Of a stretch of DNA of 64,000 bases, positions 1,436 to 63,907 are shown in pieces. The stretch is taken from NCBI RefSeq assembly GCF_001194135.2, contig NC_068990.1, positions 88,249,971 through 88,313,970 on the forward strand. Direction: 5' to 3'. The translations under genes and the position numbers were made by a program. Each line of letters begins with the position of its first letter. The stretch's first letter is position 1. The stretch comes from Octopus bimaculoides. Lineage: Eukaryota. The notes under the pieces are model-generated. The model was not told the DNA's origin. It searched no databases and saw only the letters and a list, made by a program, of their open reading frames with translations.

Positions 1436-1675
1436 ATGCTCTTATCCAATTTGTAAAAATAAAAGATGCAGTTCTGAGTGTAGCTGGGAAAACATTGGTG
1501 AATAAAAAAAATGTAACAGAAGATGCCTGTGCAGAACACTGTTTGTCTCATACAAGTTGCTTGTCATTTGAAATAACTAAAGGAAGTGGAAAATGTTACT
1601 TATCAAAGGAAAGTGCAGCTCTCTCTAAGAAAATAAAAACAGACAAAAGCAGGGATTATTACCAACGAGTAAAAC
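1436..1675 (+). CDS. Exon A1, PAN/apple-like type A
   Basis: tctag|AT acceptor, C|gtaatt donor, 240 nt. DALIQFVKIK...CAEHCLSHTSCLSFEITKGSGKCYLS...DYYQRVK (C-x3-C-x5-C-x11-C). Confidence 0.9.
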
Positions 1676-4600
1676 GTAATTATTTTTTGCCTTTTATTAC
1701 TGAAGTCTAGTTTCCTCTTTTTCTCAAAATTTGTGGCTACATATGTATATTTTATATGTAAAGACATTGATGTAAACACATTTCACTGGAATTTATTACT
1801 TATAATAAATTATCCATTTACAATTTATGCACCTGATACTTTAAAATATTTGATATATGCTAGAAAATATGTAAGTGGTGCTTGTGTGTGTGTGTTTGGA
1901 TGAGTATAAAAGGTATTTCTTGTTTTCTTTTTCTTTTTCCAGCTAATGAACACCCTGTTATATTTAAAAGAGTTACCATACCAAATCAAGATAATATTGG
2001 AAGGCTTAAAAACGTGAGCTTAACGATCTGTCATGAAGCTTGCCGTGCGTATCCAGATTGCAGAATTTATGAGTACAATGAAAAATCTAAATTCTGTGAC
2101 CTAAGCAATGTGACTCACTTGACTCATGATCTTAAACCATTTGTTGGAGACTGGGATGCGTACTTAATTCATCCAGGTCAGTAGAGTATTTCCATGTTAT
2201 TTGTAGTGTGCACATCAGTGTGTTCTTAAATTTTGCATATATGTATGTAGTATATATCTATATCTATATATATATATATATATATATATTATCTTTATCT
2301 TATGATATTTACTTTGTTTTATATTATACTCATTTATTGTGCTTTTAATTATTAATTTTTCTATATGTGATAGTGGATTTTCATCGATGAGTTCTTGAAA
2401 CTTGGTTATTTTCCCTAAAACTATATATTTTATATATATTTTATCTATAAAGCTCAATTTAATTTTAATTTTTTATAAATTGATTTTAATTGAGTTTTTA
2501 CCTGTAATTTTGGATTTTGTCTCTAATATTATTATTATTATTATATATANNNNNNNNNNNNNNNNNNNNNNNNNNNNNNNNNNNNNNNNNNNNNNNNNNN
2601 NNNNNNNNNNNNNNNNNNNNNTATATATATATATATATATATATGTATCATCCATCCACCACCATTTCAATTTAAATGTATATGAATTACTTCCCTGGCA
2701 ACTCATGTACTCCTCCTGTTGTGTGGGTAGGGATATATACTTCGGTTACTCTCTTCTTTATAGCATATACTTGTATACATGCATCTTTATGAGTGCAGTA
2801 TATATCTAAGTGTATGCTTATGTGACTGCATATATAAATATTTAAACATGATATTTTAACGTTGTTGTGTAACCACCCTATCCTCTCTTCTTGTTTAACC
2901 CACATGTCCTACATTCATACCTTCTTCATCTTTCTCCTTGTTGGCCCTTGCTCTTGATGTTGTATGGAATTGAGAAGATTGTTATTCATTGAATAAATTA
3001 TGTACCAAATCTCTATGTTAGCTGGTAAGTGTTTGCACATATCTGCTTTTCAAGTGCTGACAGAAGTTTCATGATTGCCTTCTTAATGTCACTCTCAAGT
3101 ATACAATTTCAAGGCTGCTACCATCAAAGTTGGTACAATAGCAGGAAGTACTGGTGAGATTATTGAAAGGCTGGAGCAATGCCATGTTGACATGCTTGGT
3201 ATGCAAGATGTAAGATGGAAGGGAATCTCTGCTAGATTTCTCACGAGTAAGAAACAGAGGTTCAAATTCTTCTGGGTAGGTAGGAGTGATAGAGTGAGTG
3301 ATATAGGCATACTTTTAGCAGAAAACTGGGTGCTTTTTTCTTCATGCCATCAGCACTATTTAGGTTGCTGGGTGACTCATAGGACTACGTACCCAGATGA
3401 AATGGGGATAATTTTCAAGTTAGGGGACAAATAATTAAAGTGGTGGTTGTGGTGATGATATATATATATACATACATTTGTTTCTACTTGTGTGCAAATT
3501 TCTTTACTGTTTCAGTTAATATTTTTTATTCTAAATTTGTCTGTTCATTCTCATCTTCTAACATATATTCACTTTTAATATCAGTTTCTCTTATCAATTC
3601 CAGTTTTCACAGAAATTAACTGTGGAGCACCAAAAGACATTGCTGGTGCATTGAAGTTCTACAGTAACACCAACTATAAATCTGAAGTGATTTATACTTG
3701 TCCAGGAGGAGAAAAACAAAAGTCAATTTGTGAAAAGGATAACCTATGGACTCCAGTAAGGTTTATCTGTGAAGGTAACATAAATAGTTTCTCTCTCTTG
3801 TTTCTGTCTATGAAATTATGTCTCACTTTTCTGCTAAATATATTTCTGAGTTGAAGAATTCATGTTTCCATGACAATTTCTATTGTGTTTACACTTGGTG
3901 GAAGGGAGAAAGGAAGCTATCCTCAGACCAGAGATCATCCAAATGCTTACAACACAGTTGACTCCATTGAATCTACCCAAAGACCAGGTAGTGCTATTAA
4001 ATGAGTGGATTAAGTCTGTCAAGCAAGAGATTGGAGTGTAGAAACTAGTTGTCTCCAACAGGCTTCCGCATAGTTTTCATCCACAAAGTTTAGCTTTGAA
4101 ACAAATTCTTAACCACATAAACAAAATTCTACCTGAAACCACATTGCTGTTAAGTAAACTTATACCCTCCACAGCTATACCTCATCTCATCGTGATAGAT
4201 TTTTCTCTTAATTTCTAACTTGGCTTTTCTCCTACTTTATGTCATCATCCAAATTCTTTATAATATAATGCTCCCAGTCTTACTTTATTAAAGCTTGACA
4301 ATCCTCTGAAACAGACTTCTGATACTCCTCTGATCTTCTGTTCTACCATCCTAATTTATAATTATCCTTTCTATAATAGGCACAAAGCCTGGAATTTTGG
4401 AGTAGGGATTGGTTAATTACATTGATCATATTACTCAACTGGTACTTATTTTATCAACCCTTAAAGGATGAAAGGCAAAGTTAATCTAGGTGGAATTTGA
4501 ATCTAGACCATAAAGATGGACAAAATGTTGCTACACATTTTGTTTAGTGTACTAATGATTCAGCCAAGCTCACCACCTTATCCTAAATTATAATAATACC

Positions 4601-7600
4601 AATAATAATAATAATGTTTTCTGATTTGGCAAAAACCCCAACATTTTTGAGAGAAAATTTTCCGTCATCAATTACAGTACTTATCAACTCCAGAACTTGA
4701 CTTATTTTATGTTATTAACCCTTGCAAGGCTGAAAGGTAACAGTGACATTGACTGCTTTTGAACTGAAAACATGAAGAGCCTGAATTGCATGCCATAAAG
4801 CATTTCTTGCAATGCTCTACTTAGCATACATGTAAAAAAAAAAAGATGCAGGTGTTGATGCAATCCTCTTGAATATAGAAGGCCTACTATCTAGGCCCAA
4901 TGGAAGAACTCCATCCTGACCTTCAAGAACACATGTCCTCTCAGTTAGTGTTCTCTTACCTATAGGTCTATGCACTGTTTTTCCTATCTATTCTTGATCT
5001 ATTTTACCACTTTCACTTTCCTCATGGCATGACATTTTCTCACAGAATATTAGACATGAATGACACAGCATGTTTGACAGGAACATTTTATTACTGTCAA
5101 AGCAAAGTGTTACAAACAGATACTCTCTCTCTTCTCTCTCTCTTTCACACACATGCACACACATACATACATACTTATGTACACACACACATACATGCAT
5201 ACATACATATATGTAAAATGGGTTTATTTCAGTTTTTTCCATCAAATTCATTCACAAGACTTTGGTCGGTCCAAAGTTATAGTAAATGACACTTGCCCTA
5301 GGTGCAACTCAGTTGGACTGAACCTAAAACCTTGTGGTTGGGAAGTAAACATGTTACTACTGGCCATGTCTGCAGCATTCAATTTTTATTTCTACTAAAA
5401 GAACAATGAGGGTTGGGGTGGGGTCACTTTCTTCATGGAAAACAATTAGTAAAGTTGCTAATTATTGAACAAGGATTTATGATTAATAAACTTGTATTAA
5501 CGTAAGATACAGAAATAAATTTTTTATTCTCAAATGTGTGATGATGCTAATGGAATAGCGTGAACAGGATAAATTATCCATACATTGCAGAAAAATACAT
5601 TACCGGCCAGTCATTTACCACTCAATGGGTGGCAAAATTATGCTAATGACTTATTCCAGTTATTGATATACAGAAGAAACATCCTTGTCACAAATAATCA
5701 CTTTCCCTTTGTATCTCACTAATAGTATTTTTTTTTTTTTTTTTGATGAATAAAATTCCTTAGCTTGGTGAAGTAAGTTATGAATGTCAACATTTACTAC
5801 ATATTTATATTAATTCACTAAATGATAATGAAAGTGAAATTATTTTACTTCTCCAAGACAAAACTTGCAAAATAGTGAAATGATGAGTCTTGTCATGACT
5901 ACTCATATTTAGTTACATCTTTTTACATTTTGGGTTCAAATGCCACCTGGATGTACTTCACCTTTCACATTTCTGAGGTTGATAAAATAAGCATTAGTCA
6001 TGGCTGTGATTGATTTATTCATATGCATTCTCATCACAGAATGTGTGGCTTTCTGTTTAAGTTAGAAACTATTATAATAGTTGTTGGTAAATCAACAATA
6101 ATTATAATTATCCTTGTTGTTAAGGGTGATGGACTGACAAACTCATTAGAGCATCAGACAAAATGTACTGTGATATTTTTCCAGCTTTTTAACTTGAGTT
6201 CCAATCCTATTGATGTTAACTTTGCTTTTCCAGAGCCAATAAATCAAAATGCCAGTCAATTTTATCAACCTACTTCAAAGTTTTTGTTCTTATTATTTGT
6301 TATAAAAATATTATTCTTACTATTTTTCATTGCTCTAAATTTTATTTAGTTCCAGAAACTAAGAATGAATTTGTGAAAATAAAAGGTGCAGTACTGGATG
6401 TGTTAGGGAAAACACTGATCAAAAAAAAAACTGTAACTGCAGAAGCCTGTGCAGAAAAATGTTTGTCTGAGGAAAATTGTTTATCATTTGAAATAACTAA
6501 AGAAGGTGGAAAATGTTACTTATCAAAGAAAAGTGCAACTTTCTCCAAGAAAATAAAATCAGACAAAAGCAGAGATTACTACCAACGAGTAAAACGTGAT
6601 TATTTTTTTGTAGTTTATTATTGAATTTTTTCTTTTTTTTCTGAAATTTGTGATTCCATTTGTACTTCATAATATATAAACAACCATTTCTGTAAAGACA
6701 TTGGCAGGTTTACCTATAAGGGCAGACATAAACAAGTTTCAGCAATAAGGAATATTAGGAACTGTAAATATTGTTAGAGCATTAGAGCATTCTCATACAG
6801 CATTTGTTCACCTTAAACATATTTGTGCATATTTTCTGTTTTTCTTCTCTTTATCTACGAAAGGAAATCCTTGTATTTCTTAAACCTGAATAGTAGTAGC
6901 AGTAGTAGTAGCAGCTAGTAGTAGCAGTAGTAGTAGCAGGTGTTAGTAAGTATACAAGTAAATGTGCCTGTTGACTCGAGAAGGCTAACTGGGAGAGAAT
7001 ACTTACTTTAGTGGTAAGGGTAGCTATGGTTTTGTAGGATTTCCAAGAGTAACCATTTGAGGTCTCCCATCCAGTGGAGAATTTATATTCTTTGTTTAAA
7101 ATTTTGGTATTTTTTCTTTTTTGTTGTATAGTTTACATGCACTTTTATGTCATTCCTTGTTATATCCATGTGCAGACAGGATGCCGGATTCACTTTTACT
7201 GAAAGACAAGAAGCCAAACAGACACAATGCCAAACAGACACAATGCCAAACAGACACAATGCCAAACAGACATAAAGCTGAATGGACACAATAATAATAA
7301 AAAAAAACATCCTTACCTACATAGTTTAATGACCAATTCACCAATTTGGCACTTAAGATTTAATATGATTAAATTTGTCGTTCTGGCATCTTGTCTGTTT
7401 GGCATTGTGTCCATTCAGCTTCTTGTCCTTCGGCAAAAGTGCATTTGATATCCTGTCTGTATACTGTTATATCTCACTCTATTGTCCCCAAAGTTCTTGA
7501 CTACTCTTAGCGATTTATAAAAAACTTTGTTTTTATTATTATTTTATGGGTATTTTTCAAATATATAATTATGTAGAGGTACCATGTAAATGAAATTTTG

Positions 7601-9995
7601 AATAAAATATGAGTAAGACATTTGGTGCATTGTTATCGAAATGGACGATTTATTATAGTAGCAAGATCAATCCACAAAATAATTTTTCAACATAAGACAT
7701 CCTTCTCAGAATTACATCATAAGACATACTCAAAGCTTAGCCTAAATATTTCAGTTTTAGGTAATCCATATAGACATTCTTCTGATGATACACTTTCGTT
7801 TAAAATTGCATGGTCATAACAATAGACATCTTGGTTGACCACTGGTTAAGGAGAGTTTTCACCCTACAAAAACACACTATCAAGTTAAGGATGTACAAAT
7901 GGATTATCTGCAGATATAGATATAAGTCTGAAAATAAACCTCAAGATGTTCTACAACTCATGAATTCTAACTAGGATATCAGTTTATGAAATAGTTATTT
8001 GTGGTATTATTCAGTTTCCTTATACAAAACCATGCAACACAAGCTTTATAACATTTATTGTGTGTGTGTGTGTGTCTATGTGTGCGCATGCGTGTATGTA
8101 TGTGTGTGTGTGTGCGCGCATGCGTCTGATTTTAAAATACATTTCATGTCTTTTCTTGTTTTTTGCAGCCAATGATAAGCATTTAATGTTTAAAAGCATT
8201 AGCATACCAAAGCAGGATGTTTTTGAACAGCTTAAGAATGTTGATGTAAAGAAATGCAATAAAACTTGCCTTCTATCTCCAGAATGTAATTCTTACTTGT
8301 ACAATGAAAAAGCTAAATCATGTTTTCTGAGTAATGTTACTCAATTCACTGGTAAACTTGAACCCAACAGTGGAAATTGGGATGTATACATAAATAATCC
8401 AGGTCAGTAGAGTGTTTCTACCGTATTTATTGTGTGCATATCTTTGTGTGTATTTATATATGTATGTGTGTGTGTGTGTGTAAGGACTTCAATGCTGCAT
8501 AGTAGTAAGATGTGGGCCTTGAATGTAGTGGGTATGATAAGACTGGAAAGAAATGAATCAAGCATGCTCTGTTGAACTTGTGATGTAAGTGATCAGGAAC
8601 AGCATTGTATGTATATCTAAGTAAAAAACTGGGTATAAGAGAAAACAAATGTTGTGTGCAAGAGAGAAGACAGCACTGGTATAGTTGTACAATGCACTTA
8701 GATGAGGACAGTTGTATAGAGAAGTGCCGATCACTAAATATAGCAGAAACTTGTGAGTGAGGAACACATAGGAAGACATAAGAGGCTAACTTCGGAACGC
8801 TGAACAGGATAAAACAAAGATCTGGGATGTTTGGTCATATGTGCTTCTTGAGAACACATGCCCATTACAGCAAAACTGACATTTGGAAGCACAGTGTATG
8901 TATATACCATTGTCCAAAAAATCTTTTTCAACCATGGCCTAAAAGGGGTTAACTTCTTGGACCTTAATCAGGACCTTAAAACACTATAAACCCAATGAAT
9001 AACTGCACTATATCAATAGATCCTCCTGTCACCCTAAATCTATTGTTAATAGTCTAGTAAAAATATATCGCATCACATGGTCAAAGAACAGATCTTCCTA
9101 AATAATATCCAATATTGTAATGAGGTCCTGGCTAGTAGTGGCTTCAGGAAAGCATCATGTATTACACGAATATCCCCCTAAAGTCCTCTATTCAGGACCC
9201 CTCTCCAATAATAACTTCACCAAGCTGTATCTTGTAACACTGTCTCATGCAGGATATAGTTGTACACTCCATTGATGAGAGACACAAGGAATTACTAACT
9301 GTCAGAGCATGTGACTCAATGGACATGCCATCTACCAGTCTTGATGGACATGTAGACAGACATCCCAGGAATGACATCGACTGATAAGCATGCTGATATT
9401 AAAGTTACTGCTTGATGGGAGGACAGAGTTGTCTAATACAAGGCCAGTTACCACAGTATATATGCTAATGGCTATTGTAGCAGCAGTTGAACTGGAAATC
9501 AGATTAACAGGCCACCTGTTCTTATGCAATCAATTGCCAATGCTGGTGGTAACCCAGTAACATCTTATGTCCAATCCATCCAGTATCACCTTTGTCCAGT
9601 ACCCCTACTATCCCTTCTAGGATAAGTAAAAAAGGATGGTTTTTTGGTATAACTTCTTATTGAGTTGCTTTGTACCCAGCTAGAACTCTAAATATTGTAG
9701 TGAGATCTCTGACCCTTATGGTATTCATGGCACCATTCCCTGCTAACCATAATAAACCCTCTACTGATGACTCACCCTTAATACATGCTATCCTACTGGA
9801 CCAGAGATACTACCATCAACCATTACTAGGGACCACAAAAGAGCTGAAGTCAATCCACACTCCACTGACTTGAATGAAAGCAGACCACTGAAATTAGTTG
9901 TATTTTTAATAAAATATGTATATGTACATACATATACATATAAATAAAGACATCATCATTAATAAATAATAATAATAATAATAATAATAATAATC

Positions 9996-13544: not shown

Positions 13545-13666
13545 GTAGTAATTATGTAGATATTTAGCTCACTCTGGTTCACGTTAACATCCAGAAACTT
13601 AGACAACTGCAGCAGTTTCTAAAATTCACTGAGCAATAGTCATTAAGTATATATATNNNNNNNNNN

Positions 13667-30418: not shown

Positions 30419-30460
<42 letters not shown>

Positions 30461-53696: not shown

Positions 53697-55046
53697 ACGC
53701 ACACACACATGCATTTATGTATGTATTTATATTTGAGTACATATTTCTTCTATTCGTTTCAGTCAATATATTCTATTTCAAATTTGTCATTATCTTCTCA
53801 TTTTCACCCTCCTCCTAACATATATTTGCTATTAATATCAATTTCTCTTATCACTTCCAGTCTTCACAATAATTGACTGTGGAACTCCAAAAGACATTGC
53901 TACTGCATCAAAGTCTTACAATTCCACCACCTATAAATCTGAAGTGATCTATACATGTCCAGGAGGAAAAAAATTAAAATCAGAATGTAAGGAGGACAGT
54001 GAATGGGCTCCATTGTCATCTGGTTGTAAAGGTAATGTAAAGAGGTTCTCTCTTCTTGCCTTTGCCTATATGAATTATCTAGGTCATATGAATTGCCTAT
54101 ATGAATTATCTAGGATGAAAGTAAAAATAGTTTGTTTTCCTTGGGAAAAGATTCCAAAATCAGTAGTAAAGTGATGTTTCTTGTCATGATTAGACTACCC
54201 ATATTTAATTACATTCTTTTACATTCTGGATTCAAATCTTACCAGTAGATATATCACCTTTCATGCTTCTGAAGTTGATAAAAAAGCATTAGTTAAATAA
54301 TGAGTTTCATTCATTTTCATGTATCCTTACGCTGCAAAAATTTGTGACTTTGTTACCAGCAACAATAATTATAATAATTCTTGTTGAAGGCAAAGGATTG
54401 AGAAAATTATTCAAGCATCAAGCAAAATGTTTTGTGATATTTGTTCTGGCTTTTGAACTTCTGGGTTCAAATCTGGCTTTTGACCACTTAATCTTTCCAA
54501 GACCAATATGTAAAAATGCTGCCAATCAAGGGTAGAGGTGTATTTTAATCGGCCAATTCTTGCTATAATGTTTTGGCTTTCTATCTATGTTAGAAAATAT
54601 TAGTTATTATTTTTCATTGATCTAAATTTTACTTTAATTTCAGTCACTGAGATCCTTTTTTTGAAAGTAAAAGATGCAATTCTGGATGTATCTGGGAAAA
54701 TATTGTGGCCTAAGAAAAATGTAACAGCAGCAGCCTGTAAAAAAAAATGTCTGTCTGACAAAGATTGTTTATCATTTGAAATAAATAAAAGAAGTGGACA
54801 ATGTTACTTATCAAGGGAAAGTGCAGCTTCTTCCAAGAAATTGAAGTCAGCCAAAGGCACAGATTACTACCAACGAGTGAAACGTAATTATTATTTGGAT
54901 TTTATTATTGGTCTGCTTTTTTCGGGGGGGGGGGGGTTTCTGAAGTTTGTGTATCAGTTTACACTTCATATTATATACAAAACCATTTCTGTTAAAACAT
55001 TGACAGGTTTACCTATGAGAAGAGACATAAACATGTTCTTGACAAA

Positions 55047-55078: not shown

Positions 55079-57445
55079 TATTAAGAACTGTATACACTGT
55101 TAAAACATTCTGATACAGCATTTGTTCAACTTGAATACTTTTCTATATATTTTCAGTTGTTTGTTTCTTATTTTACATCAGAAAGGAAACTGTTGTTCTT
55201 TTACTTAAACCTGAAGAGTAGCAGCAGCAGCAACAAGTTTTTATTCATTTGCCTATTTTGACATGACTTATTGCTGGTACAGCACAGTGTTTCACAAGGG
55301 ATGTCATGTTTTACATAACACAATATACAAAATAACAGAGAAAGAAATGCCAATCTACAGATTCATGTATTTTCTACATTTTGACATGGTTGCTATGGCT
55401 GGATGCCCTTCATATCACCAACCATTATACCACATGAAGAAAGTACATTTTCTCATACTGCTAGAATTAGAGAAACTATTTACAAGGACTAAAGAATCAC
55501 CTCAACTTATATAGGTTTCTATTCAGAGTAGTTCCATGGCTTTAAAAACATAAAAGCCAGCAAATTCGCTCAATATTCCTTTTGAAATCCTTCAACATTG
55601 AAATCCTAGACATAAGGGAAAATTCATCAGGTTTATTGATCTCAGTATTAAAATACTTGTGCATGCAAGTATGTCATTACTTTCATGATAAACCTTTTGG
55701 GCCAAAAAGAAAGTTCAGTATTTCATATCTTCTATCTGTTGATCTCTCTTTATTTATCTAACAACATTGACCAATACATTGATGGGTGGATGGAGGAATG
55801 AATACTAATAATAGTAAACTTATTGTAGAAAGATATTGTATCAAACTGAATTAACTTAACAAAATAGCTGTGGTTGTAATTATTTTTAAAAAATTAGTTA
55901 TTCAGAATTTGTACTATCAGCAAGAAAAGTATACATAAACAAATGACTGAAATGAAAGGAATTAATCTTGGTTGGCAAACAGCTTAGACTGTGTTTTGTT
56001 ATTGAAAACTATAATGATGGTATTGGTGGGTTGAATTGACAGTGTAAGTGTTGTTTTTTTTTTTTCTTAATTGAACCAAATTATTTATGTCATCTATCAA
56101 TTAATGGATGTGCAGAAGTGCAATTACAACCCGCTCACTTGAAAATAGATATTTGTTTATGAAATATGGATGACAGAACGTAAGCTAATAGGAGAAAGAA
56201 TGAAATGGTACAGGCAATGATGTAAGGAGAAGCAGAGCGTCAAATAATGAAAACAGGAACAGGAGCATCAAAGAATATAGAATGAATATTTACAAGATAG
56301 AATATTAAATGAAAATGAGAGAAAACATCAAAAGAAAAAAAAACCCTGTAAACATATGGTTGAATGTTACAACATTGGTGACATGAATATTCTCTGTAAT
56401 CAATGTGAAGATGTTAGATTTGTAAATGAACCTCTCAACTGCTGAAAGAATGGGAAACTCATGCCCCTTCAATTACAACCTTATCATGATAGGAATTTTT
56501 AAATGAATATAATGCAGAATTTACAATTTATAATGGAACACTAATTTTTGTGGTTCTATATAAACTTTACCATGAAATTTCCATGGGTATTGCTAGTTAT
56601 TATTACTTTATAGATAGTTTAAAAATATTATATAATTATGTAGAAGTACTGTTAATGATATTCTGAATAAAATATGAAGTGCATTGTTATTAAAATGAGC
56701 AATTCATTATATTAGCATGATCCATCCACAAAATACATTTTCAGCATAAGTCACCCTTTTCAGAATAAATGTGGATCTGATTGCATCATGAGTTATACTC
56801 AAACCTTTGCCTGAATGTTTTTATTTTGGATAATCCATTTAGACATTCTTCTTCCGATGATGTGCTCTTGTTTAAGATTGCATGGTTGTAACAACAGACA
56901 TCTTGGTTGATCACATGTTAAAGGAAGTTTTTACCCCTACAAAAGCACACTATCAGGTTAGTGATGTACAAAGAATTGTCTGCAACCTAGAAATTGAGAC
57001 AAGTTTGAAAATGAGTCTTAAGATGTTCTAAGACTCAGGTGAATTATTTTGTAACTTGTGGGTCATTTTGTGAATCAGTTGTTTGTGCATAATGCATGTG
57101 TATGGATGTGTAAATGTGTATGTTTGCATTTAAAATGTATTCTTTCTTCTTTTTCTTCTAGCCAATAATGAACATTTCATGCTTAAAAAAGTTAGCATAC
57201 CAAAGGAGGATATTTTAGGACAGCGTAAGAATAAGACCTTAAAGGAATGTAATGAAGAATGCAACAGACATCATGGATGTAATTCTTACCAGTACAATGA
57301 GGAAAATAAATTATGTGCTCTGAGTAATGTGACTCAGTGGACTGATAAACTTAAACCCAGCGAAAAACATGTGGATGTGTACATAGCTAACCCTGGTCAG
57401 TAGACTATTTTCATCTTATTTGTATGCATGTGTTTGTGTATTTGC

Positions 57446-58310: not shown

Positions 58311-60986
58311 TTTATGTATATATTAATATTATCTCAGTTATTAAAACTTTCAGTAATTTAAATACGTTAATAGTTACCAGAGGTAGCAAAATTACACTAA
58401 AAAACAAGATATCACAGCCGTTTTACAGGTAGATATACCAAGTTAAAGTGATACATTTTGAGAAGATATATATATATGTGTGTGTTTGATAGATGAATAT
58501 CTTGTGAAAGCAGTACAGGACATGTACAGAGATGCTGCTAGTAAGGCAAGAGTTGGCCATGGGTACAGTGATGAATTTAGGTGTTCACCAAGGGATGGTC
58601 GCAGCCTCCTCTCATTCATCATCATCCTCCAGACCATAACAGAAGCCCATGAGAACTACTATATGCTGATGATCTTTCCCTCATAGCAGAATCTGTAATA
58701 GAATTAGAATAGAAATTCCGCAACTGAAGAAAGTACAACAGAGCTGCAGCTCAATCTATAGCATTCCCATCATTTATTTCGTGGTATTGAGCATAGAGCA
58801 ATATCCATGGTATTGAGCATAGAGAATTCATCAATCAAGAGTTCTACTGTGACATTGTGAAGTGTTTGAGAGAGGACATTCAGCAAAAGCGACTGGATCT
58901 GTGGAGCTAGAAGAATTAGAGTCTTTATGATGACAATGTACTCTATCACTGAGCTCTGCACATTCGTGAGTTTCTCGCCAAAAGTGACTTTATATCACTT
59001 CTACGCCCACCCTATTCACCAGATTTAGCACCTGCAGACTTCTATCTCTTCCCCAAGACGAAAATGCAGCTTAAAGGTTGTTGTTTTAACACCGTAGTTA
59101 AGATACACAGTGAATTGTAAGAGTGGCAGGAATGCTGGGACCAGTGTATTGCTGCAAAGGTGACTATCTTGAAGGAGATGATGTTAAAACTTAGGTTAAT
59201 AAGATATTTCTTATTAAACTGGTCTCATCCTGAAACTTTTTGATACCATCTTGTAACATTTTTATCTCCTAATTTTAACCTTCCTTCTAACATACATGCG
59301 GAATTCATATTAGTTTGTTATCAATTTCAGCTTACTCAAAAATTGACTGTGGATCTCCAAAAGATGTTGTTGGTGCATTCAAATTGTACAATGCCACCAC
59401 CTATGAATCTGAAGTGACCTATACTTGCTCAAATGGAGAACAACTGAAGTCAGAATGTGAAAAGGACAGCAAATGGACACCTGTTCCATCTGTATGTGAA
59501 GGTACTGTAAATAGTTTCTCTTTTGTCTCTCTTCATAGCATATACTGCAGGATGTGGTCATGTACCTTGTGAACGTCTACAAAACAAGTGCACACCTCTA
59601 GGCAAATTCCTGAAGTTTCTTGCAGATTGTTATTGAGTGCATAACTTGTTGGTTTTGCTGCATCTCAGATTGAAGACACACTTCTTCAGCTACCTTGTAC
59701 TCAATGATCTCCCTACATCTCTTTTCCAGAGATAAATCATAGACTTTATTGGGGAGGCTCAACAAGGCAAGTTCTCTGTAATTAGAGCACTCTCATGTGT
59801 TTTTAAAAATTGGGATTCCTACCTGAGATTGCCATTACTTTGGTGTCTTTGCAGAGGTGCATGTCGCCTAGTCTGGATAAGTCATCCAGAAAATACCTTC
59901 TTTATTCTAGGCTTTTAACATATTGGTCCAGATTTCATATGCACCAGTAGCCCTGCCACATTTGATTGCTTTCTTTAATCACCTCTAGGAATTTGGCTTC
60001 AATGTGGTTAAATTGCACTTGTAGATGCACATTTTGCCTACCTTTCACTATGAAATCAATGGATGGTTTTACTAGAACACTTTGTTGGTCAATTTAAAGT
60101 CAGAGTCCAGTTTAACCTCAAAGTCTTCCCCATAACTTAGCCTTCAGCAGTTTCACTGTTTCTGCATCAACGTTTTGCACTTCAGTGCATCATATATGTA
60201 AATTGAGAGACCCATTTAAAAGCCACTCTTTGTAATCCTATTTCCATTGTATCTTGGAATTCCTGGTTAAATCAGGGAGTTCTTTTACCTCTTGGTGCCA
60301 CTCCAAGTTGCTATCCTTTACATGTTACACACTGCTGTGCAAAACATTCTCTACACTATTTTGACATCCTCATTTTCTTCAGGAAGGTCTCTGAATTTCT
60401 ATGCAATAGTGTCTACATATTTGTTTCTAATCCCATCATCCAACAGAGCTTCCCACTTTATTTAGTAAGTCACCTGGTCTTATTAGTTTTGTGAGTTCTG
60501 TCTATTGTAGTCTCAAGTTGCAGACAACTAGGTGGTGATTAGTTGATAACTCAGCCCCACTCTTCACATAAACATCCAATCACAGAATCAAAGAAATACA
60601 AATGACAGTGAGATTTATCTGCGTCCCACTAAGTATCTTATTCAAAGTTTATCTCCTCATTCTCTCCCACCAAATATACATGCAGCATTGGCAAACATCA
60701 GAGTTTTCAATTACAGATTATGCGCAAATTAATTGTGGAACTCCAGAAGATGTTGATAATGCATTGAAGTCATATAAAACCACCACCTATAAATCTGAAG
60801 TGACCTATACTTGCCCAAAGGGAGAAAAACTAAAGTCAACATGTGAAAAGGACAACAAATGGACTCCAGTAGCTTCTGCTTGTAAAGGTAATGTAAATAT
60901 TTTCTCTCCTGTTGTCTTGGTCTGTCCATTAATATTTGATTTTGCATTAAATTTTGTTTTACTTTATTGACTCCTCCTCCTCCTCC

Positions 60987-61038: not shown

Positions 61039-63907
61039 TTAAAGCTCATTTTCCAAGCCTACCTGGGTGGAACTGTTCAACAGCTTTCAATGATCCACAG
61101 GATTGCATGAAGCCCAAATGTCACCTATGGCATGGTTTCTGTTGCTTGATGCACTTTCTAGCACCAACCACTTTACAGAGTGTACTGGGTGGTGCTTTTA
61201 TTTCATGAAAGTGGCATTTGTGAGGTCAACAAACAAATTGAAAGCCAATTACTTTTCTCTGAGCTACATGTTTATGCACAGTGGTCTCCATCCACTCTAA
61301 CCATTTTTGCCACTTTCACCTTACATTCAATACTTTCTCTCCTCTCTTATCTTCTATAGAAGTGCAAATTTGTGTGAGAGATTGACGGAAGAGGTCAGTC
61401 TCTATTGTCTGATCTTTCAGCTCCTTTCGGTTCACAATATCTTCAACTATAGCTTCAAATCAAGTAAAATTGCCTTCTCTGCCCAGTTAACGAAGGGTTT
61501 GGGGCAACCACCTTAAACACAACAGCAGCTGTTTCACTTAATTCCACAAGTCAGGTCAACAATGCCTGAACAATGACTGGGTGCATGCAAAATGATTTTG
61601 TTTTGCTGCAAGTATCTCAGACAGGATTGTTGAGTGGTAGTTCCTTGACTGTAGATTTTTTTATCTTGGACTAGTAAAACCCCTTGGTGGCTTTGCAAAG
61701 CCAAGGATTTTAGGAAGTTGTCCATAGTATTCAGTGACCAAAAGGTTTGCAAAACATATTTGCCAGTTAGTTTTCATTGATGATGATGATCATCATCATT
61801 ATTTAATGTCTGCTTTCCAAGCTGGCATGTGTTGGATGGTCTACCGTGCTTCTACAGCTGGATGCCCTTCCTAATGCAAACCACTCTGATAGTGCAGTGG
61901 GTGCTTTTTATGTGCGACTGGCACAGGAGCCAGTCAGGAGGTATTGATGCTCAGTGCAAACCTTTAGATTACCAGTGCTCTATTCATCCACTAACTCTCA
62001 ATTGATTGTTAGAATGGGATATCCACCAATTCCATTACCCATGTCAGAATTCATCCAGTGTACTTTATCTTTTGTAATCCATAGGATTACATTGGATTAT
62101 ATGGTCATCCCCTTTACTTAAAATAGTGGTGTGTGATTGTGGGAGATTTTGTTAATATTTCTTGCATAAGTGTTTTCACAGTCACTGGCTCATGATAAAT
62201 ATTGAAGTTTAATATTGCAAGCTACCAAATCTGACATAGCTGATCCTCTGATATAATCTGATGCCTGGTTCAACACCACAATCTTCAGTTGGTCATAGCA
62301 AAGACGGTGAACAATATTTGGTCCAATGTTTATATATTTATTACAATATCAAGCATTCATATTGAGCCACATATTTTCTCAGGCTTGCTATTTAGCATTG
62401 AGATTCTTGTCAAAGGTAATGTTTATTTATTCACAGTTTAAGAAATTAATCATGCATCATCTTGTAGCTTGAAGATTTCAATGATGTGATTATTTTGTAC
62501 TAGAATGATGTTGTAGGTTAGGTATGAAAGGCTGGATATGGCTGATTTAATCATAAAGCAGGTAGAACTTTTGGGCTGGATATGGCTGGTTAAATGCTAG
62601 TGGTTTAATGATGTGTAAGGCAGAGGGTTGCCTCAAAATTTCATGTCATGATTGTTTCTGTTATGACTAGCTTATCAATAATAAGCTCAGTGAATCAATT
62701 ATGTATTCACTGTTGAAGGACGACATGACCACACATAATTTTAAAAAATCAATGGGATTGTGTAATGTCTCTGTCATGTCAAGTGAACTGATGAGGCTGA
62801 GAATCAAACCTAGATCCTTGAACCACACCACTCAGTTCACATTTATACTAAAAGAACAACTAGGGAAAAATACTCAAGGTCCCTTTCTGCATGGAAAACA
62901 AATATTAAACTGGCTAATTATTGAGCAAAGATATGATTAATTAGGATTTCACTCTCAATTCATGGTAAAATCATTATATTGACTTCTTCCGGTGAAGAAA
63001 TTTGGAAGAAACAAACTCTTAAAGATAATCATTATTTTTATTGTCACACTAAAAAAGGTACATTAAGTTGTGAGTGTACACTTTTACTACATACATATAC
63101 TAATTCACAAGATTACGATGAAAGTGCAATCATTTTTGTTATCCAGGCCAAAAACAGTAAATTCATGTAATTTGCTGTGACCTGCCACATTTAGTTACAT
63201 CGTTTTATATTCTGGATTTAATCTTAAGAGGATGTATTTTGCTTTTTACCCTTCTGATGTTGATAAATCAAGCACTAGTGAAGAAATAGTTACTTTATAT
63301 TCATGTATCCTCACAGAAAAATGTGTGGCAATATGCTTATATGAAGAACTGCTTCTATCAACATTGTTACTGTGAAGAATAATCATAATTACTGTTGTTG
63401 GTTAGGGTGATGTATTCACAGAATCGTTCTACCATCAGACAAAATGTGTTGTGGTATTTTTCTAATTCTTTAACTTCTGACTACAAATCCTGCTAACGAT
63501 AATTTTGCTCTTCCAGGGCCAATAAAATGTAGGGACCAGTTTAATTTTATTGGTCCCTCCAGGGCCAAATATATTAATTAACTCCTGCCTCAAACTTTTG
63601 GCCTTATTTCTTTGTCAAAAATTTATAGTATTGTTATTTTTCATTCTTCTCAATTATATTTACACTCTAGATATTCAAATCCATTTTGTGAAAGTAAAAA
63701 ATGCAGCTCTGGATGCAACAGAAAAAACATTATGGAGTAAGAAAAAAGTAACAGCAGATGCATGTGCTGAAAAATGTTTATCTGACAAAAGTTGTGTATC
63801 ATTTGAAATGACAAAAGCAAGTGGACTCTGTTACTTATTAAAAAAAACTGCAACTTCCTCAAAAATAAAAACAGACGAAAGCAGAGATTACTACCAACGA
63901 GTAAAAT
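1436..63907 (+). CDS. Interior of a giant multi-exon gene encoding (PAN-A/PAN-B/Sushi)n repeats; predicted extracellular glycoprotein, partial at both ends
   Basis: 34 homologous exons of three classes in repeating order. All are flanked by AG/GT, phase 1-1 and stop-free, with invariant Cys. Junction codons formed in genomic order are all sense codons. Summed exon length is 7185 nt. Confidence 0.88.
1943..2176 (+). CDS. Exon B1, PAN/apple-like type B
   Basis: ttccag|CT, G|gtcagt, 234 nt. NEHPVIFKRV...NIGRL...CHEACRAYPDCRIYEYNEKSKFCDLSNVT...WDAYLIHP. Confidence 0.9.
2550..2621. other. Assembly gap (others: 13657-13666, 31330-31442, 34904-35414, 42542-42706)
   Basis: N runs next to (TA)n or (TG)n microsatellites. 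Confidence 0.95.
3110..3335 (+). mobile_element. RTE-clade LINE endonuclease (APE) N-terminal fragment
   Basis: Translates to KVGTIAGSTGEIIERLEQCHVDMLGMQDVRWKG...KFFWVG...IGILLAENW, matching the APE N-terminus (xQExRWxG, GVGIL). Confidence 0.75.
3604..3774 (+). CDS. Exon C1, Sushi/CCP
   Basis: ttccag|TT, G|gtaaca, 171 nt. VFTEINCGAPKDIAG...YTCPGGEKQKSICEKDNLWTPVRFIC. Confidence 0.88.
6356..6595 (+). CDS. Exon A2, PAN type A
   Basis: tccag|AA, C|gtgatt, 240 nt. ETKNEFVKIK...CAEKCLSEENCLSFEITKEGGKCYLS. Confidence 0.9.
7171..7461. mobile_element. MITE/foldback element with imperfect terminal inverted repeats of about 45 bp and an internal 16-mer tandem
   Basis: Left cagacaggat...cacttttactgaaagacaagaagc; right gcttcttgtccttcggcaaaagtg...atcctgtctg. 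(gccaaacagacacaat)x3.75 at 7213-7272 has an inverted copy near 7392-7410. Confidence 0.65.
8169..8402 (+). CDS. Exon B2, PAN type B
   Basis: tgcag|CC, G|gtcagt, 234 nt. NDKHLMFKS...CNKTCLLSPECNSYLYNEKAKSCFLSNVT. Confidence 0.9.
8480..8720 (+). mobile_element. RTE LINE ORF2 3' fragment (same position as 30790-30910 and 57474-57535)
   Basis: VRTSMLHSSKMWALN...RLERNESSML, matching the RTE C-terminal pattern LYGSETW...LERxE. Confidence 0.65.
9150..9680 (-). mobile_element. Decayed non-LTR retrotransposon fragment, probably R4/Dong-type
   Basis: Minus-strand remnants TYPRRDSRG (LYxPRxxGGRG-like) and downstream motifs, with many stops. Confidence 0.4.
9959..10083. repeat. (AAT)n microsatellite
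   Basis: Direct observation. Confidence 0.95.
10572..10742 (+). CDS. Exon C2a, Sushi/CCP
   Basis: tttcag|TT, G|gtaaca, 171 nt. VYTEIDCGTPKDIAG...YVCPDGEQLKSICEKDNKWTSVASTC. Confidence 0.88.
11720..11890 (+). CDS. Exon C2b, Sushi/CCP
   Basis: tttcag|CT, G|gtaatg, 171 nt. AYEKINCGTPKDVVG...YICPKGVKLKSACRKDNKWTPVPSTC. Confidence 0.88.
13168..13407 (+). CDS. Exon A3, PAN type A
   Basis: tttag|AT, T|gtaatt, 240 nt. DPQIHFMELK...CAEKCLSDKTCLSFEINRRSRKCYLS. Confidence 0.9.
13723..14200 (+). mobile_element. Tc1/mariner-superfamily (maT-like) transposon 5' fragment
   Basis: Begins TA|cacagggtgtg after a (TA)n run. Encodes ...RTPEFVGEIQTMIDNAPSQSIRSIIRNMGVSEFLIRQVVHEDIRYSSYK (HTH region). Confidence 0.75.
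14536..14766 (+). CDS. Exon B3, PAN type B
   Basis: tgcag|CC, G|gtcagt, 231 nt. GEPLKLKKVSIP...CNETCYQYSECNSYDYNEEAKICELS. Confidence 0.9.
14920..16480 (-). mobile_element. RTE LINE 3' portion (RT remnants plus (GAT)n tail)
   Basis: Minus strand REKLGIKGIRCIVQQRRLHWFGHLMHMDENNC...RKTWD, with a tail at 14920 matching the RTE-SINE end. Confidence 0.7.
16505..16650. repeat. (CATA)n/(CA)n microsatellite
   Basis: Direct observation. Confidence 0.9.
16809..16979 (+). CDS. Exon C3, Sushi/CCP (absent from ORF track)
   Basis: ttccag|TA, G|gtaatg, 171 nt. My translation: VFTIIDCGPPKDIIGASKSYNTTTYKSEVTYTCPGKHKFKSICKEDNKWTSEVSHCK. Confidence 0.88.
17460..17877 (+). mobile_element. Tigger/pogo-like DNA transposon remnant (3' TIR gaggtatgcctg)
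   Basis: Ends in a pogo-type TIR 50 nt before the A4 acceptor and replaces the intron block found upstream of other A exons. The 5' end was not identified. Confidence 0.45.
17928..18167 (+). CDS. Exon A4, PAN type A
   Basis: tccag|CT, T|gtaatt, 240 nt. ASQIHFVKIE...CAQKCLSDRHCLSFETTKKSGKCYLS. Confidence 0.9.
19993..20226 (+). CDS. Exon B4, PAN type B
   Basis: tctag|CT, G|gtcagt, 234 nt. DDDLLKFKSTSIPGYDTFER...CDHVCHQTLGC...CDRSNAT...WGWD. Confidence 0.9.
20650..21340 (+). mobile_element. R4/Dong-type non-LTR retrotransposon RT fragment
   Basis: DHCESTNILTVEQ...LLINKTV...WLDYK*AFDFVLHSWMLETL, matching RT domains 1-3, with stops. Confidence 0.75.
21421..21591 (+). CDS. Exon C4, Sushi/CCP
   Basis: tttcag|AT, G|gtaatg, 171 nt. 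DYAKIECGLPKDIAG...YTCRKGEQLKSICGKNRKWTPVAETC. Confidence 0.88.
21872..22410 (+). mobile_element. Ty3/gypsy integrase fragment
   Basis: DSFTKWLEI...FTRFGIPDVIVYDNGAQFVSSEF / PYHPTSNGQAD...FKRALRK (rve core), frameshifted. Confidence 0.85.
22888..23127 (+). CDS. Exon A5, PAN type A
   Basis: tttag|AT, C|gtaatt, 240 nt. DTQIHFMKVK...CAGKCLSDKDCLSFELNRKSGECYLS. Confidence 0.9.
23690..24330 (-). mobile_element. R4/Dong-type RT fragment
   Basis: GPGPDSVQGY...; KDKSKGNIVCYYRPITCIPLVWKLLTGMLSESIYEHLDSQNLLP. Confidence 0.8.
24343..24630. repeat. Two (ATT)n microsatellites (24343-24442, 24556-24630)
   Basis: Direct observation. Confidence 0.95.
24631..24885 (+). mobile_element. tRNA-derived SINE (octopus-type, Meta-like central domain), relatively young
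   Basis: ggcggcgagctggcagaatc...ttctgagttcaaattcc...gtcaactttgccattcatcctttcggggtcgataaattaagtacc...gtagaaagg(ata)n. Family assignment is from memory. Confidence 0.75.
25477..25710 (+). CDS. Exon B5, PAN type B
   Basis: ttccag|CC, G|gtcagt, 234 nt. SNKTVSLKRV...NIGRL...CEQACHLYQGCRSYEYDDKAKMCDLSNVT. Confidence 0.9.
25840..26312 (+). mobile_element. RTE LINE 3' end with SINE-type tail
   Basis: MHWYGHVMCMGEDSCVKKC...GRGRPRKT followed by the gagtggttggcattaggaagggcatc motif. Confidence 0.75.
27071..27241 (+). CDS. Exon C5, Sushi/CCP (absent from ORF track)
   Basis: ttccag|TC, G|gtaata, 171 nt. VFSIIDCGPPKDIAGASKSYNSTAYNSEVIYTCPRGEKLKSVCKEDHKWMPFLSECK. Confidence 0.88.
27500..27690 (-). mobile_element. 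tRNA-derived SINE head (second family; similar copy at about 5285-5370)
   Basis: Reverse-oriented tRNA-like head gaactgaacccagaaccatgcatttgagaagcaaacttgttaccatgcagcca. Confidence 0.55.
28513..28752 (+). CDS. Exon A6, PAN type A
   Basis: ttcag|TC, C|gtaatt, 240 nt. VTEVHFVKIE...CEKKCLSDKTCLSFEINKGSGQCYLS. Confidence 0.9.
30507..30740 (+). CDS. Exon B6, PAN type B
   Basis: tctag|CT, G|gtcagt, 234 nt. NDEHFALKQVSIPK...CNEACYEYQGCNSYQYSEKNKLCVLSNIT. Confidence 0.9.
32207..32377 (+). CDS. Exon C6a, Sushi/CCP
   Basis: ttccag|TT, G|gtaaca, 171 nt. VFTRVNCGSPKDVVGAFKLYNAT...YTCSDGEQLKSECEKDNKWTPVASVC. Confidence 0.88.
33382..33552 (+). CDS. Exon C6b, Sushi/CCP (absent from ORF track)
   Basis: ttacag|AT, G|gtaatg, 171 nt. 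DYAQINCGTPKDIANASKSYKTTTYKSEVTYTCPKGEKLKSTCEKDNKWTPVASACK. Confidence 0.88.
33841..34077 (+). CDS. Exon A7, PAN type A (one-codon deletion)
   Basis: tctag|AT, T|gtaatt, 237 nt. DIQIHFVKVK...CAEKCFSDKKCVSFEIIKTSGLCYLL...ASSKIK. Confidence 0.9.
35860..36316 (+). mobile_element. Two tandem tRNA-derived SINE copies, same family as 24631
   Basis: Both carry gacttcgcctttcatcctttc/gactttgcctttcattctttc and end in gtagaaag(att)n. Confidence 0.7.
36948..37178 (+). CDS. Exon B7, PAN type B
   Basis: ttccag|CT, G|gtcagt, 231 nt. DEPLKLKKVSIP...CNEACQEYEGCNSYEYNENDKLCGLS. Confidence 0.9.
37282..38150 (+). mobile_element. Composite Tc1/mariner remnant: mariner 5' TIR and HTH, then maT-like catalytic C-terminus
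   Basis: TA|cacgtggtctgatcaataagt (also at about 35463). DEHSGRHTTSRTEKN...TIREL; then APSH...WPRNSPDLNPLAYYVW...AVIDAESDYI. Confidence 0.8.
38234..38404 (+). CDS. Exon C7, Sushi/CCP
   Basis: ttccag|TT, G|gtaatg, 171 nt. VFAKVDCGPPKDIAG...YTCTEGEKLKSICEDDNKWTPLASTC. Confidence 0.88.
38880..39119. mobile_element. pogo/Tigger-type MITE, 240 bp, TA target duplication
   Basis: TA|cagtaatcctttgccatattg ... caatagttgaagaattactg|TA, inserted in the conserved post-C intron block. Confidence 0.75.
40120..40356 (+). CDS. Exon A8, PAN type A
   Basis: tccag|TC, C|gtaatt, 237 nt. VAELHFVKIT...CAEKCLADPNCLAFEITKTGGKCYLT. Confidence 0.9.
42201..42434 (+). CDS. Exon B8, PAN type B
   Basis: ctccag|CA, G|gtcagt, 234 nt. 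TDEIIKFKSTMIPGEDTFER...CAQACHQNSKC...CDRSNVT...WGWD. Confidence 0.9.
42980..44285. repeat. Pyrimidine-rich tract (about 42980-43270) and purine-rich GA tract (about 43830-44285)
   Basis: Direct observation of low-complexity composition. Confidence 0.85.
44390..44682 (+). mobile_element. RTE-related SINE
   Basis: gtaaaagcacccatcacactctcagagcagttggcattaggaagggaatccag...ccatgccagcatgga...(gat)n. Confidence 0.75.
45340..45900 (+). mobile_element. R4/Dong-type non-LTR retrotransposon C-terminus (CCHC knuckle plus restriction-like endonuclease)
   Basis: AQDQALNT...ESVTHVVSACESLAQKEYEHRHDKVAQNLHWLLCCKYG...WDFDFQTD..DHRRPDIV, with stops. Confidence 0.85.
46280..46503 (+). mobile_element. RTE-related SINE, young copy (CpGs retained)
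   Basis: gtgacacgtaaaagcacccactacactctctgagtggttggcgttagg...catggaaagcggacgttgaacgatgatgatg. Confidence 0.8.
46578..46748 (+). CDS. Exon C8, Sushi/CCP
   Basis: ttccag|AG, G|gtaata, 171 nt. EYSQIECGPPKEVVG...YTCPNGEKVKSSCEKDNKWTPVVSSC. Confidence 0.88.
47012..47251 (+). CDS. Exon A9, PAN type A
   Basis: tctag|AT, T|gtaaat, 240 nt. DSQLHFVKIK...CAKKCLSDKNCLSFEITKGSGKCYLS. Confidence 0.9.
49084..49314 (+). CDS. Exon B9, PAN type B (absent from ORF track)
   Basis: tttcag|CT, G|gtcagt, 231 nt. DKPLQIKKVSTPEKKNIGRLTNVNLKKCNEACLQYIGCNSYEYNKKGKLCDLSNVTQLTAELKPNNGNWDIYMINP. Confidence 0.9.
49590..50186 (+). mobile_element. RTE LINE 3' end with SINE-type tail
   Basis: Similar to 25840-26312 and ends in (gat)n at about 50186. 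Confidence 0.7.
52140..52750 (+). mobile_element. Tigger (pogo) transposase C-terminus and 3' TIR
   Basis: WQYVSEFVEKYHHEK...LINDSALVHFRNILKVRKMQTFLDMFL; ends gaggtatcactg|TA. Confidence 0.75.
52840..53110 (+). mobile_element. Helitron PIF1-like helicase C-terminal fragment
   Basis: PFQFKR...[36 protein letters not shown]...QNIIYPEAL. Confidence 0.85.
53861..54031 (+). CDS. Exon C9, Sushi/CCP
   Basis: ttccag|TC, G|gtaatg, 171 nt. VFTIIDCGTPKDIATASKSYNSTTYKSEVIYTCPGGKKLKSECKEDSEWAPLSSGCK. Confidence 0.88.
54644..54883 (+). CDS. Exon A10, PAN type A
   Basis: ttcag|TC, C|gtaatt, 240 nt. VTEILFLKVK...CKKKCLSDKDCLSFEINKRSGQCYLS. Confidence 0.9.
55725..56520 (+). mobile_element. Probable Helitron-derived insertion
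   Basis: Diverges from the paralogous A6-B6 intron at about 55725, contains the 124-bp repeat of 53205-53328, and encodes IGDMNILCNQC...EPLNC-like Zn-region remnants. Confidence 0.45.
57162..57395 (+). CDS. Exon B10, PAN type B
   Basis: tctag|CC, G|gtcagt, 234 nt. NNEHFMLKKVSIPK...CNEECNRHHGCNSYQYNEENKLCALSNVT. Confidence 0.9.
58470..58740 (+). mobile_element. RTE LINE RT fragment
   Basis: IDEYLVKAVQDMYRDAASKARVG..., with the catalytic YADD (tatgctgatgat) near 58661. Confidence 0.75.
58940..59255 (+). mobile_element. mariner transposase C-terminus and 3' end
   Basis: REFLAK...PPYSPDLAPADFYLFPKTKMQLKG...WQECWDQCIAAKGDYLEGD. Confidence 0.85.
59331..59501 (+). CDS. Exon C10a, Sushi/CCP
   Basis: tttcag|CT, G|gtactg, 171 nt. 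AYSKIDCGSPKDVVGAFKLYNAT...YTCSNGEQLKSECEKDSKWTPVPSVC. Confidence 0.88.
59540..60480 (-). mobile_element. Decayed R4/Dong-type retrotransposon C-terminal fragment
   Basis: Minus-strand remnants resemble the pre-CCHC region. It is absent from the paralogous C6a-C6b intron. Confidence 0.45.
60717..60887 (+). CDS. Exon C10b, Sushi/CCP
   Basis: ttacag|AT, G|gtaatg, 171 nt. DYAQINCGTPEDVDNALKSYKTT...KSTCEKDNKWTPVASAC. Confidence 0.88.
60990..61205 (-). mobile_element. RTE-related SINE (another copy at about 61790-61935)
   Basis: (cat)n followed by ...gcaccaaccactttacagagtgtactgggtg; the second copy has ggatgcccttcctaatgcaaaccactc. Confidence 0.65.
63671..63907 (+). CDS. Exon A11, PAN type A (same one-codon deletion as A7)
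   Basis: tctag|AT, T|gtaatt, 237 nt. DIQIHFVKVK...CAEKCLSDKSCVSFEMTKASGLCYLL. Confidence 0.9.

Follow-up and report, generated by a model that had tools for sequence, protein, structure and literature searches.

The closest described relatives of the locus analysed here are the GON proteins of coleoid cephalopods, namely GON-Abd-1 (R4G2C1) of Abdopus aculeatus, GON-SepT-1 and GON-SepT-2 of Sepioteuthis australis and a protein of Acanthosepion pharaonis. These are proteins of about 450-500 aa composed of one PAN-PAN-Sushi(-Sushi) cassette and a C-terminal GON domain. The full-length members carry an N-terminal signal peptide, the cuttlefish model being N-terminally truncated. By their UniProt names, and as reportedly described by Ruder et al. 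2013, they are taken to be products of the posterior salivary (venom) gland.

Tandem PAN/apple modules, as found in the octopus locus, are also present in Toxoplasma MIC4 and Sarcocystis SML-2, which are multivalent galactose-binding adhesins. These are however related to the octopus modules at the level of the fold only (14-19% identity), belong to a different kingdom, have no Sushi modules and contain 2-6 domains instead of dozens. The same fold is shared by the apple domains of factor XI and prekallikrein and by the N domains of HGF and plasminogen (Foldseek E 5e-5 to 1e-2). The HGF N domain is heparin-binding and the octopus A modules are likewise basic (pI 8.7-9.7), but the true apple domains have a third disulfide and the octopus modules are not accompanied by a protease or kringle. 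As regards gene organisation, CSMD1-3 consist of alternating CUB and Sushi modules and complement receptor 1 of long homologous repeats of 7 CCPs. These genes resemble the octopus locus in having each module on a symmetric exon, a strict alternation and a higher-order repeat of several modules. Nevertheless the partner module in CSMD1-3 is CUB and not PAN, and the homology stops at the Sushi fold, without orthology.

The window, i.e. the whole stretch of 64,000 nucleotides that was analysed, belongs to Octopus bimaculoides chromosome CM046610.1 (about 88,249,971-88,313,970), is AT-rich (about 34% G+C) and contains five runs of N. A six-frame scan revealed three recurring types of Cys-rich open segment on the plus strand, here called A, B and C. 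When one exon of each type was used as tblastn query, exactly 11 A, 10 B and 13 C exons were obtained, all on the plus strand (Table 1). These are the same 34 exons, with the same first and last nucleotide, as in the original prediction, which had also described their order as strict. The alternation of A, B and C is indeed maintained throughout, but the cassettes are not strictly ABC, as the order ABC ABCC ABC ABC ABC ABCC ABC ABC ABC ABCC A places a second Sushi exon in cassettes 2, 6 and 10.

Table 1. Exons, assembly gaps and transposon-related segments of the window. Exon rows are tblastn copies bounded by an AG acceptor and a GT donor; positions are those of the window and identities are given at the nucleotide (nt) or amino acid (aa) level.
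Feature	Position	Strand	Remarks
A1 (PAN)	1436..1675	+	phase 1-1, 240 nt, 4 Cys
B1 (PAN)	1943..2176	+	234 nt, 4 Cys
C1 (Sushi)	3604..3774	+	alternative in-frame acceptor 3613
A2 (PAN)	6356..6595	+	
B2 (PAN)	8169..8402	+	
C2a (Sushi)	10572..10742	+	alternative acceptor 10581
C2b (Sushi)	11720..11890	+	second Sushi, ABCC cassette
A3 (PAN)	13168..13407	+	
B3 (PAN)	14536..14766	+	
C3 (Sushi)	16809..16979	+	
A4 (PAN)	17928..18167	+	
B4 (PAN)	19993..20226	+	
C4 (Sushi)	21421..21591	+	
A5 (PAN)	22888..23127	+	also Pfam
B5 (PAN)	25477..25710	+	also Pfam
C5 (Sushi)	27071..27241	+	
A6 (PAN)	28513..28752	+	93% nt identity to A10
B6 (PAN)	30507..30740	+	
C6a (Sushi)	32207..32377	+	alternative acceptor 32219
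C6b (second Sushi)	33382..33552	+	92% nt identity to C10b; also Pfam
A7 (PAN)	33841..34077	+	93% nt identity to A11
B7 (PAN)	36948..37178	+	O. sinensis positional orthologue 75% aa
C7 (Sushi)	38234..38404	+	alternative acceptor 38246; O. sinensis orthologue 82% aa
A8 (PAN)	40120..40356	+	O. sinensis orthologue 81% aa
B8 (PAN)	42201..42434	+	LOC128248838 starts at internal Met; O. sinensis orthologue 84% aa
C8 (Sushi)	46578..46748	+	O. sinensis orthologue 87% aa
A9 (PAN)	47012..47251	+	O. sinensis orthologue 75% aa
B9 (PAN)	49084..49314	+	O. sinensis orthologue 72% aa
C9 (Sushi)	53861..54031	+	
A10 (PAN)	54644..54883	+	
B10 (PAN)	57162..57395	+	
C10a (Sushi)	59331..59501	+	atypical donor GTACTG
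C10b (second Sushi)	60717..60887	+	
A11 (PAN)	63671..63907	+	array runs on past window end
Assembly gap	2550-2621		intron B1-C1
Assembly gap	13657-13666		intron A3-B3
Assembly gap	31330-31442		intron B6-C6
Assembly gap	34904-35414		intron A7-B7
Assembly gap	42542-42706		intron B8-C8
Helitron Rep/helicase C-terminus remnant	52911-53156	+	intron B9-C9; Helraiser 7lcc E=5e-8, PIF1 helicases E about 7e-4
Mariner-type transposase motif, short ORF	58953-59117	+	intron B10-C10a; weak matches to SETMAR and Mos1, E 0.04-0.2
SINE-like repeat	392-760		
SINE-like repeat	15015-15115		
SINE-like repeat	26243-26305	-	
SINE-like repeat	49984-50192	-	
SINE-like repeat	61850-61927		
ORF with sub-threshold PHD-finger match	15791-15979	-	21.5 bits, cutoff 24; probably TE part

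The A exons have 237-240 nt, the B exons 231-234 nt and the C exons 171 nt, every length being divisible by 3. All introns are of phase 1 (the codon is split after its first base), and all 34 exons are therefore of phase 1-1, which is the arrangement of class 1-1 shuffled modules, with a single module per exon and phase-1 introns on both sides. A pyrimidine tract and an AG acceptor precede every copy and a GT donor follows it, the donor being GTAAT, GTGAT or GTAAA for the A exons, GTCAGT for the B exons and GTAAC or GTAAT (GTACT once) for the C exons. A conserved sequence upstream of the A exons, whose translation is hydrophobic, was considered as a relic signal peptide or internal start, but it contains no ATG and corresponds to the pyrimidine tract.

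Once spliced, the 34 exons amount to 7,185 nt (2,394 codons); this sequence is free of stops and encodes 136 Cys, four in every exon, in agreement with the earlier claim that no stop, frameshift or lost cysteine is present. The other two sense frames of the spliced sequence contain 171 and 281 stops, and at the rate observed in the introns (0.057-0.064 per codon) about 140 stops would be expected by chance over this length. The proposed length of 2395 aa was a near match that is here corrected to a range of 2,380-2,394 aa, because four C exons (C1, C2a, C6a and C7) have a second in-frame acceptor 9-12 nt downstream of the first one. These tandem acceptors could yield linker variants of 3-4 aa. 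No extra or decayed exon copy was found in the introns by a sensitive HMM scan of all stop-free segments of at least 15 codons in the six frames, and no start, stop, signal-peptide or terminal exon is present inside the window. The exons of the window alone predict a product of about 270 kDa with 14.2% Lys, a pI of 8.9 and 32 N-X-S/T sequons.

The five assembly gaps are all intronic and leave the exons and the reading frame intact, and the A-B-C order carries on from one side of each gap to the other. For the gap between B8 and C8, the gap-free O. sinensis locus has B8 followed directly by C8 without an extra exon, and for the gap between B6 and C6 the gap-free paralogous cassette 10 shows the same structure. 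Each of the four gaps other than that between B8 and C8 may hide a collapsed whole cassette.

The assignment of the modules as PAN, PAN and Sushi, which had been made from the letters alone, is borne out by Pfam, by the predicted structure and by the structural comparison. Against the curated gathering cutoffs of Pfam, PAN_1 (PF00024; cutoff 21.4) scored 43.7 bits for an A exon and 32.5 bits for a B exon, and Sushi (PF00084; cutoff 20.7) scored 26.6 bits for a single C exon and 34.1 bits for a query of two cassettes, in which four stretches matched PAN_1. The PAN pattern C-x3-C ... C ... C, with exactly four Cys in invariant columns, is present in all A and B exons (21/21). Moreover the hallmarks of Sushi (four Cys, a Trp before the last Cys and C-G-x-P) correspond to C164, G165, P167, C190, C200, W206 and C213, which are invariant in 11 aligned cassettes. 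The motif S-N-x-T after the last Cys of B is invariant or nearly so in the aligned cassettes including GON-Abd-1, and is also found in the squid protein GON-SepT-2.

Cassette 9 was modelled with AlphaFold2 from an alignment of ten cassettes taken from homologous proteins, including cassettes 9 and 10 in the form given by the LOC128248838 product (mean pLDDT 83, pTM 0.70). In the model each PAN module presents a single helix (residues 28-37 and 105-114) on an antiparallel beta-sheet and the C module is all-beta. Foldseek against the PDB returned the apple domains of factor XI and prekallikrein, the galactose lectin SML-2, MIC4, the HGF N domain and the plasminogen PAp domain, all with a probability of 1.00. 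By sequence, the nearest solved structures are the apple domains of Toxoplasma MIC4, which match weakly (E about 0.01-0.02), and the likeness to lectin-type PAN domains is one of fold, at 10-25% identity. As apple domains in the strict sense have six Cys, including those of the third disulfide that joins the N- and C-termini, and the octopus modules have four, the latter are minimal PAN modules and not strict apple domains.

With a query taken from the window, strong matches were restricted to octopus proteins and to GON-Abd-1 (E=3.8e-66). An HMM of the cassette scored 351 bits on GON-Abd-1 and 158-210 bits on the squid proteins, and the aligned cassettes are 48-52% identical to the former and 32-33% to the latter. 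The domain order and the join points of the coleoid GON proteins are those of the window, and both the ABC and the ABCC form exist in squid. The A/B, B/C and C/A joins were found exactly as predicted in the cephalopod GON proteins and in another cephalopod fragment that reads across the junctions. These alignments show that the window cassette and the PAN-PAN-Sushi(-Sushi) region at the N-terminus of the coleoid GON proteins are homologous; the latter, however, have a single cassette and the GON domain, against 11 or more tandem cassettes in the window.

When 1.84 billion representative proteins were searched with a profile, multi-cassette proteins were obtained from Octopus species only, which upholds the view that this form is lineage-specific; the remaining strong matches were Sushi-only or PAN-only proteins, the Sushi-only ones being of the same general type as CSMD1-3 and complement receptor 1. 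The multi-cassette proteins are XP_036361601.1 of O. sinensis (2643 aa, from a gene that spans 152.7 kb), XP_014770598.1 of O. bimaculoides (1730 aa) and CAI9728792.1 of O. vulgaris (857 aa). Together with the products of LOC128248838 and LOC128248840 they have the architecture of the window and represent the same array or its orthologue. They are however automatic and fragmentary predictions with artefactual ends and in some cases intron read-through, and none covers the whole array. The architecture had been put forward as one that no characterised protein displays. That is in line with our literature search, which gave no description of the array gene, of octopus PAN domains or of cephalopod GON proteins, but it has to be qualified since the architecture is already deposited among RefSeq predictions. 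The databases hold it as uncharacterised fragments, broken up by an assembly rich in gaps, and the array, its hierarchy, its conservation and the link to GON proteins are undescribed in the literature searched. The product would be a mosaic extracellular repeat protein in which familiar modules are combined in an unusual, lineage-specific way and on an uncommon scale.

In O. sinensis seven consecutive exons, from B7 to B9, were found in the same order and all intact. The positional orthologues share 72-87% of their amino acids, in comparison with 55-71% for the next-best paralogue, and the seven exons pooled gave a dS of 0.19, a dN of 0.11 and a dN/dS of 0.58 between O. sinensis and O. bimaculoides. 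Because orthologous exons are kept intact and in order, the array predates the split of the two species and has been maintained in both. The A8-B8 intron has 21.6 kb in O. sinensis (locus positions 13860-35511) and 1.8 kb here (40357-42200).

Random substitution of the spliced exons was simulated at half of the inter-species synonymous divergence and gave a mean of 38 stops, with none of 300 replicates free of stops. Even with substitution at only 2% of the sites the mean was about 9 stops and again 0/300 replicates were stop-free. A silent or decaying repeat array without function would agree with the fairly high dN/dS (0.45-0.71 among paralogues in addition to the value between species), with exons that are only slightly better conserved between species than the adjacent intron, and with the fact that most of the window lies under fragmentary, uncharacterised gene models only. 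It is nevertheless extremely improbable and close to being refuted by the sequence itself, given that 2,394 codons contain no stop when at least 38 would be expected since the species split, that all 34 exons are without frameshift or lost Cys, that there are no dead copies and that the seven O. sinensis exons are likewise intact. The original prediction that the array is under selection is thus supported, and these comparisons show that selection has kept the exons intact, while a dN/dS of 0.45-0.7 also fits a weak constraint.

Among the paralogous exons of the window the DNA identity is 60-93%, with a median dN/dS of 0.71 for A, 0.46 for B and 0.45 for C and a median dS of 0.30, 0.77 and 0.53, respectively. 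In the A exons the third codon positions are as conserved as the second ones, and 200 nt of flanking sequence can still be aligned. The low synonymous divergence of the A exons suggests gene conversion or a constraint acting on the nucleotide sequence. In the aligned cassettes the Cys, the aromatic residues and the glycosylation sequons are fixed and the surfaces change fast.

The ABCC cassettes at positions 2, 6 and 10 define a higher-order repeat of four cassettes, although further downstream their spacing is less regular. An exon usually has its best paralogue at a distance of four cassettes (cassettes 6/10, 7/11, 5/9 and 4/8). In addition to the pairs marked in Table 1, the nucleotide identity is 89% for C6a/C10a, 85% for C5/C9, 81% for B6/B10 and 78% for B4/B8, and the introns flanking these block-paired exons align at about 83%. 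Since both exons and introns pair four cassettes apart, growth seems to have proceeded first by the cassette and then by a block of 13 exons and 22-26 kb. Octopods would accordingly have amplified a cassette of 3-4 exons by unequal crossing-over, singly at first and later in blocks of four cassettes. Most B exons are flanked by GT-rich or (TG)n tracts, about 40-70 nt before the exon and about 30 nt after it (for instance at 1880-1900, 8110-8125 and 30445-30460), which have been conserved along with the rest of the duplicated unit.

Past the window end the array runs on in the same orientation, through several large gaps. Located 105-148 kb downstream of the window are 21 further exons, also on the same strand, 20 of which are full length with four Cys. 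The exons continue across five NCBI products that together amount to more than 8,500 residues, and the array covers at least 212 kb. The gene models of the region are annotated as "uncharacterized" and have 1133, 709, 1865, 761 and 4083 aa. The 709-aa RefSeq model, LOC128248838, corresponds to exons B8 to A11 (98% over 677 aa) and its genomic locus is identical to positions 32233-64000 of the window. It starts at a Met inside B8, and its last junction connects the middle of A11 to a C exon that is cut short by an assembly gap. This model also places the C10a donor 6 nt downstream and the C10b acceptor about 30 nt upstream of our assignment (59496-59510/60680-60720), which adds 12 aa (GTHWQTSEFSIT). 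In the 1133-aa model the end lies about 80 nt beyond exon A7, and a gap of 511 N follows roughly 750 nt later. From their positions, the ends of the NCBI models look artefactual.

The downstream array contains an atypical B exon (positions 32125-32292 of the downstream stretch that was read) that lacks the N-terminal strand region and keeps the four Cys, and the LOC128248840 model ends by read-through of this exon.

A tandem cluster of several shorter genes, as annotated by NCBI, would be an explanation different from one giant gene, and would agree with the five separate models and with the small size and single cassette of the known relatives. We consider this rather unlikely, because the window has no signal-peptide, stop-containing or GON exon, all 34 exons are of the internal 1-1 type, and the model ends that would separate the genes fall inside B8, at a gap-truncated C exon and near a gap. 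We take the window as an internal slice of one very large transcription unit, the division made by NCBI leaving some room for several genes.

Regarding the ends of the gene, it had been recommended that the flanking sequence be inspected for signal-peptide and TM or GPI exons. In the 120 kb examined there was no TM or GPI exon, and a search with the homologues' signal peptides gave chance-level hits only, but the ends of the gene, including the 5' end of the array, lie outside that sequence. Similarly, tblastn of the window and of two further stretches of the region with three GON domains gave no match below E=0.01, a single match at 0.012 being spurious, and PF08685 (GON domain) is listed for no NCBI product in the region, the 3' end of the gene lying beyond the sequence read. 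A homologue search with the GON domain alone gave no matches and did not recover its own parent protein either, so that it carries no information on a GON gene in O. bimaculoides. Short matches in Logan (about 100-160 aa) were considered as transcripts and rejected, since they are single-exon ORFs that read through into the intron; they look genomic and are no sign of expression.

On balance we favour, as the most likely reading and with somewhat better than even confidence, an octopod-specific amplification of the GON-type cassette that produced a giant multivalent binding protein, basic and N-glycosylated. The outcome of the amplification would be a giant secreted glycoprotein, annotated over more than 8,500 aa across the array, in which short linkers join dozens of Lys-rich, N-glycosylated PAN modules and CCP spacers into a long multivalent filament. 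The avidity of such a filament for glycans or proteins would be high, and in a secretion it would serve as an agglutinin or as a scaffold for adhesion. We infer the secretion from the domain types, the 32 sequons and the presence of signal peptides in the homologues. That the modules bind glycans or proteins is in turn inferred by analogy with the lectins and heparin-binding proteins that share the PAN fold, and from the high content in Lys (14%) and the pI of 8.9. The fast amino acid turnover on a fixed Cys scaffold fits an externally directed binding role. As the GON family is linked to the posterior salivary gland, saliva or venom is suggested as one candidate setting. The roles proposed at the outset, namely immune recognition, a gamete coat or a mucus or adhesive matrix, are conjectural.

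The protein could instead be a structural component of an apical extracellular matrix or cuticle, such as the lining of sucker, gut or egg case, and not a soluble binder of saliva or mucus. The PAN-ZP proteins NOAH, NompA and LET-653 of nematodes and insects are matrix proteins. Moreover, other large PAN-repeat proteins are found in the annelid Dimorphilus, and the octopod PAN-PAN pair is also fused to VWD-C8-TIL-VWA (a mucin-like protein, in Argonauta) and to WSC domains, which would agree with a matrix role. Nevertheless the 120 kb examined contained neither a ZP or VWD domain nor any other that polymerises, and the closest homologues are soluble gland proteins, so that we regard a matrix component as doubtful.

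Since every exon is of phase 1-1, any subset of exons could be skipped in frame, and the locus might encode a diversified recognition molecule in which alternative splicing generates many binding isoforms for immunity or prey recognition. The symmetry of all exons, the tandem in-frame acceptors of four C exons, the high amino acid divergence between cassettes on a fixed scaffold and the conserved flanks of the A exons are consistent with this. However, shuffled extracellular modules normally lie on symmetric exons and symmetry alone is no proof of regulated skipping, and the duplication history accounts for the conservation of the flanks, which makes splice-based diversification quite improbable in our view. 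Mutually exclusive splicing of the Dscam type was also considered, but nothing in the sequence requires such a design.

In its most ambitious form, the reading as a multivalent binding protein would have the whole region of more than 212 kb as one gene with well over 100 symmetric exons and more than 10,000 aa, in which in-frame skipping of cassettes provides a repertoire of multivalent PAN lectins that would serve in venom, in the capture of prey or in innate immunity. This is a speculation to which we give a low chance of being right. If true, the product would be among the largest animal proteins, and octopods would have turned a venom-gland protein into a diversification system of their own.

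Lineage-specific gene expansions are a well-known feature of octopus genomes. The present locus would be a case in which a gland-protein cassette of 3-4 exons was amplified in two tiers to several thousand residues and kept across species. It links the coleoid venom-gland GON family to a giant relative, and binding in saliva, mucus or matrix is a testable setting for the two. Furthermore, the locus appears to be misannotated in the current octopus annotations, which matters for the proteomics of saliva, mucus and suckers.

The introns of the window had been described as full of decayed transposable elements, and a Helitron helicase fragment, a weak mariner fragment and a dispersed SINE-like repeat were indeed found in the window (Table 1). 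The first two were identified by sequence search against solved structures. Ten intronic ORFs compared with Pfam contained no significant TE domain, the sub-threshold PHD finger being the only match. The SINE-like repeat occurs in both orientations, and its copy at 392-760 has an internal duplication of about 100 nt.
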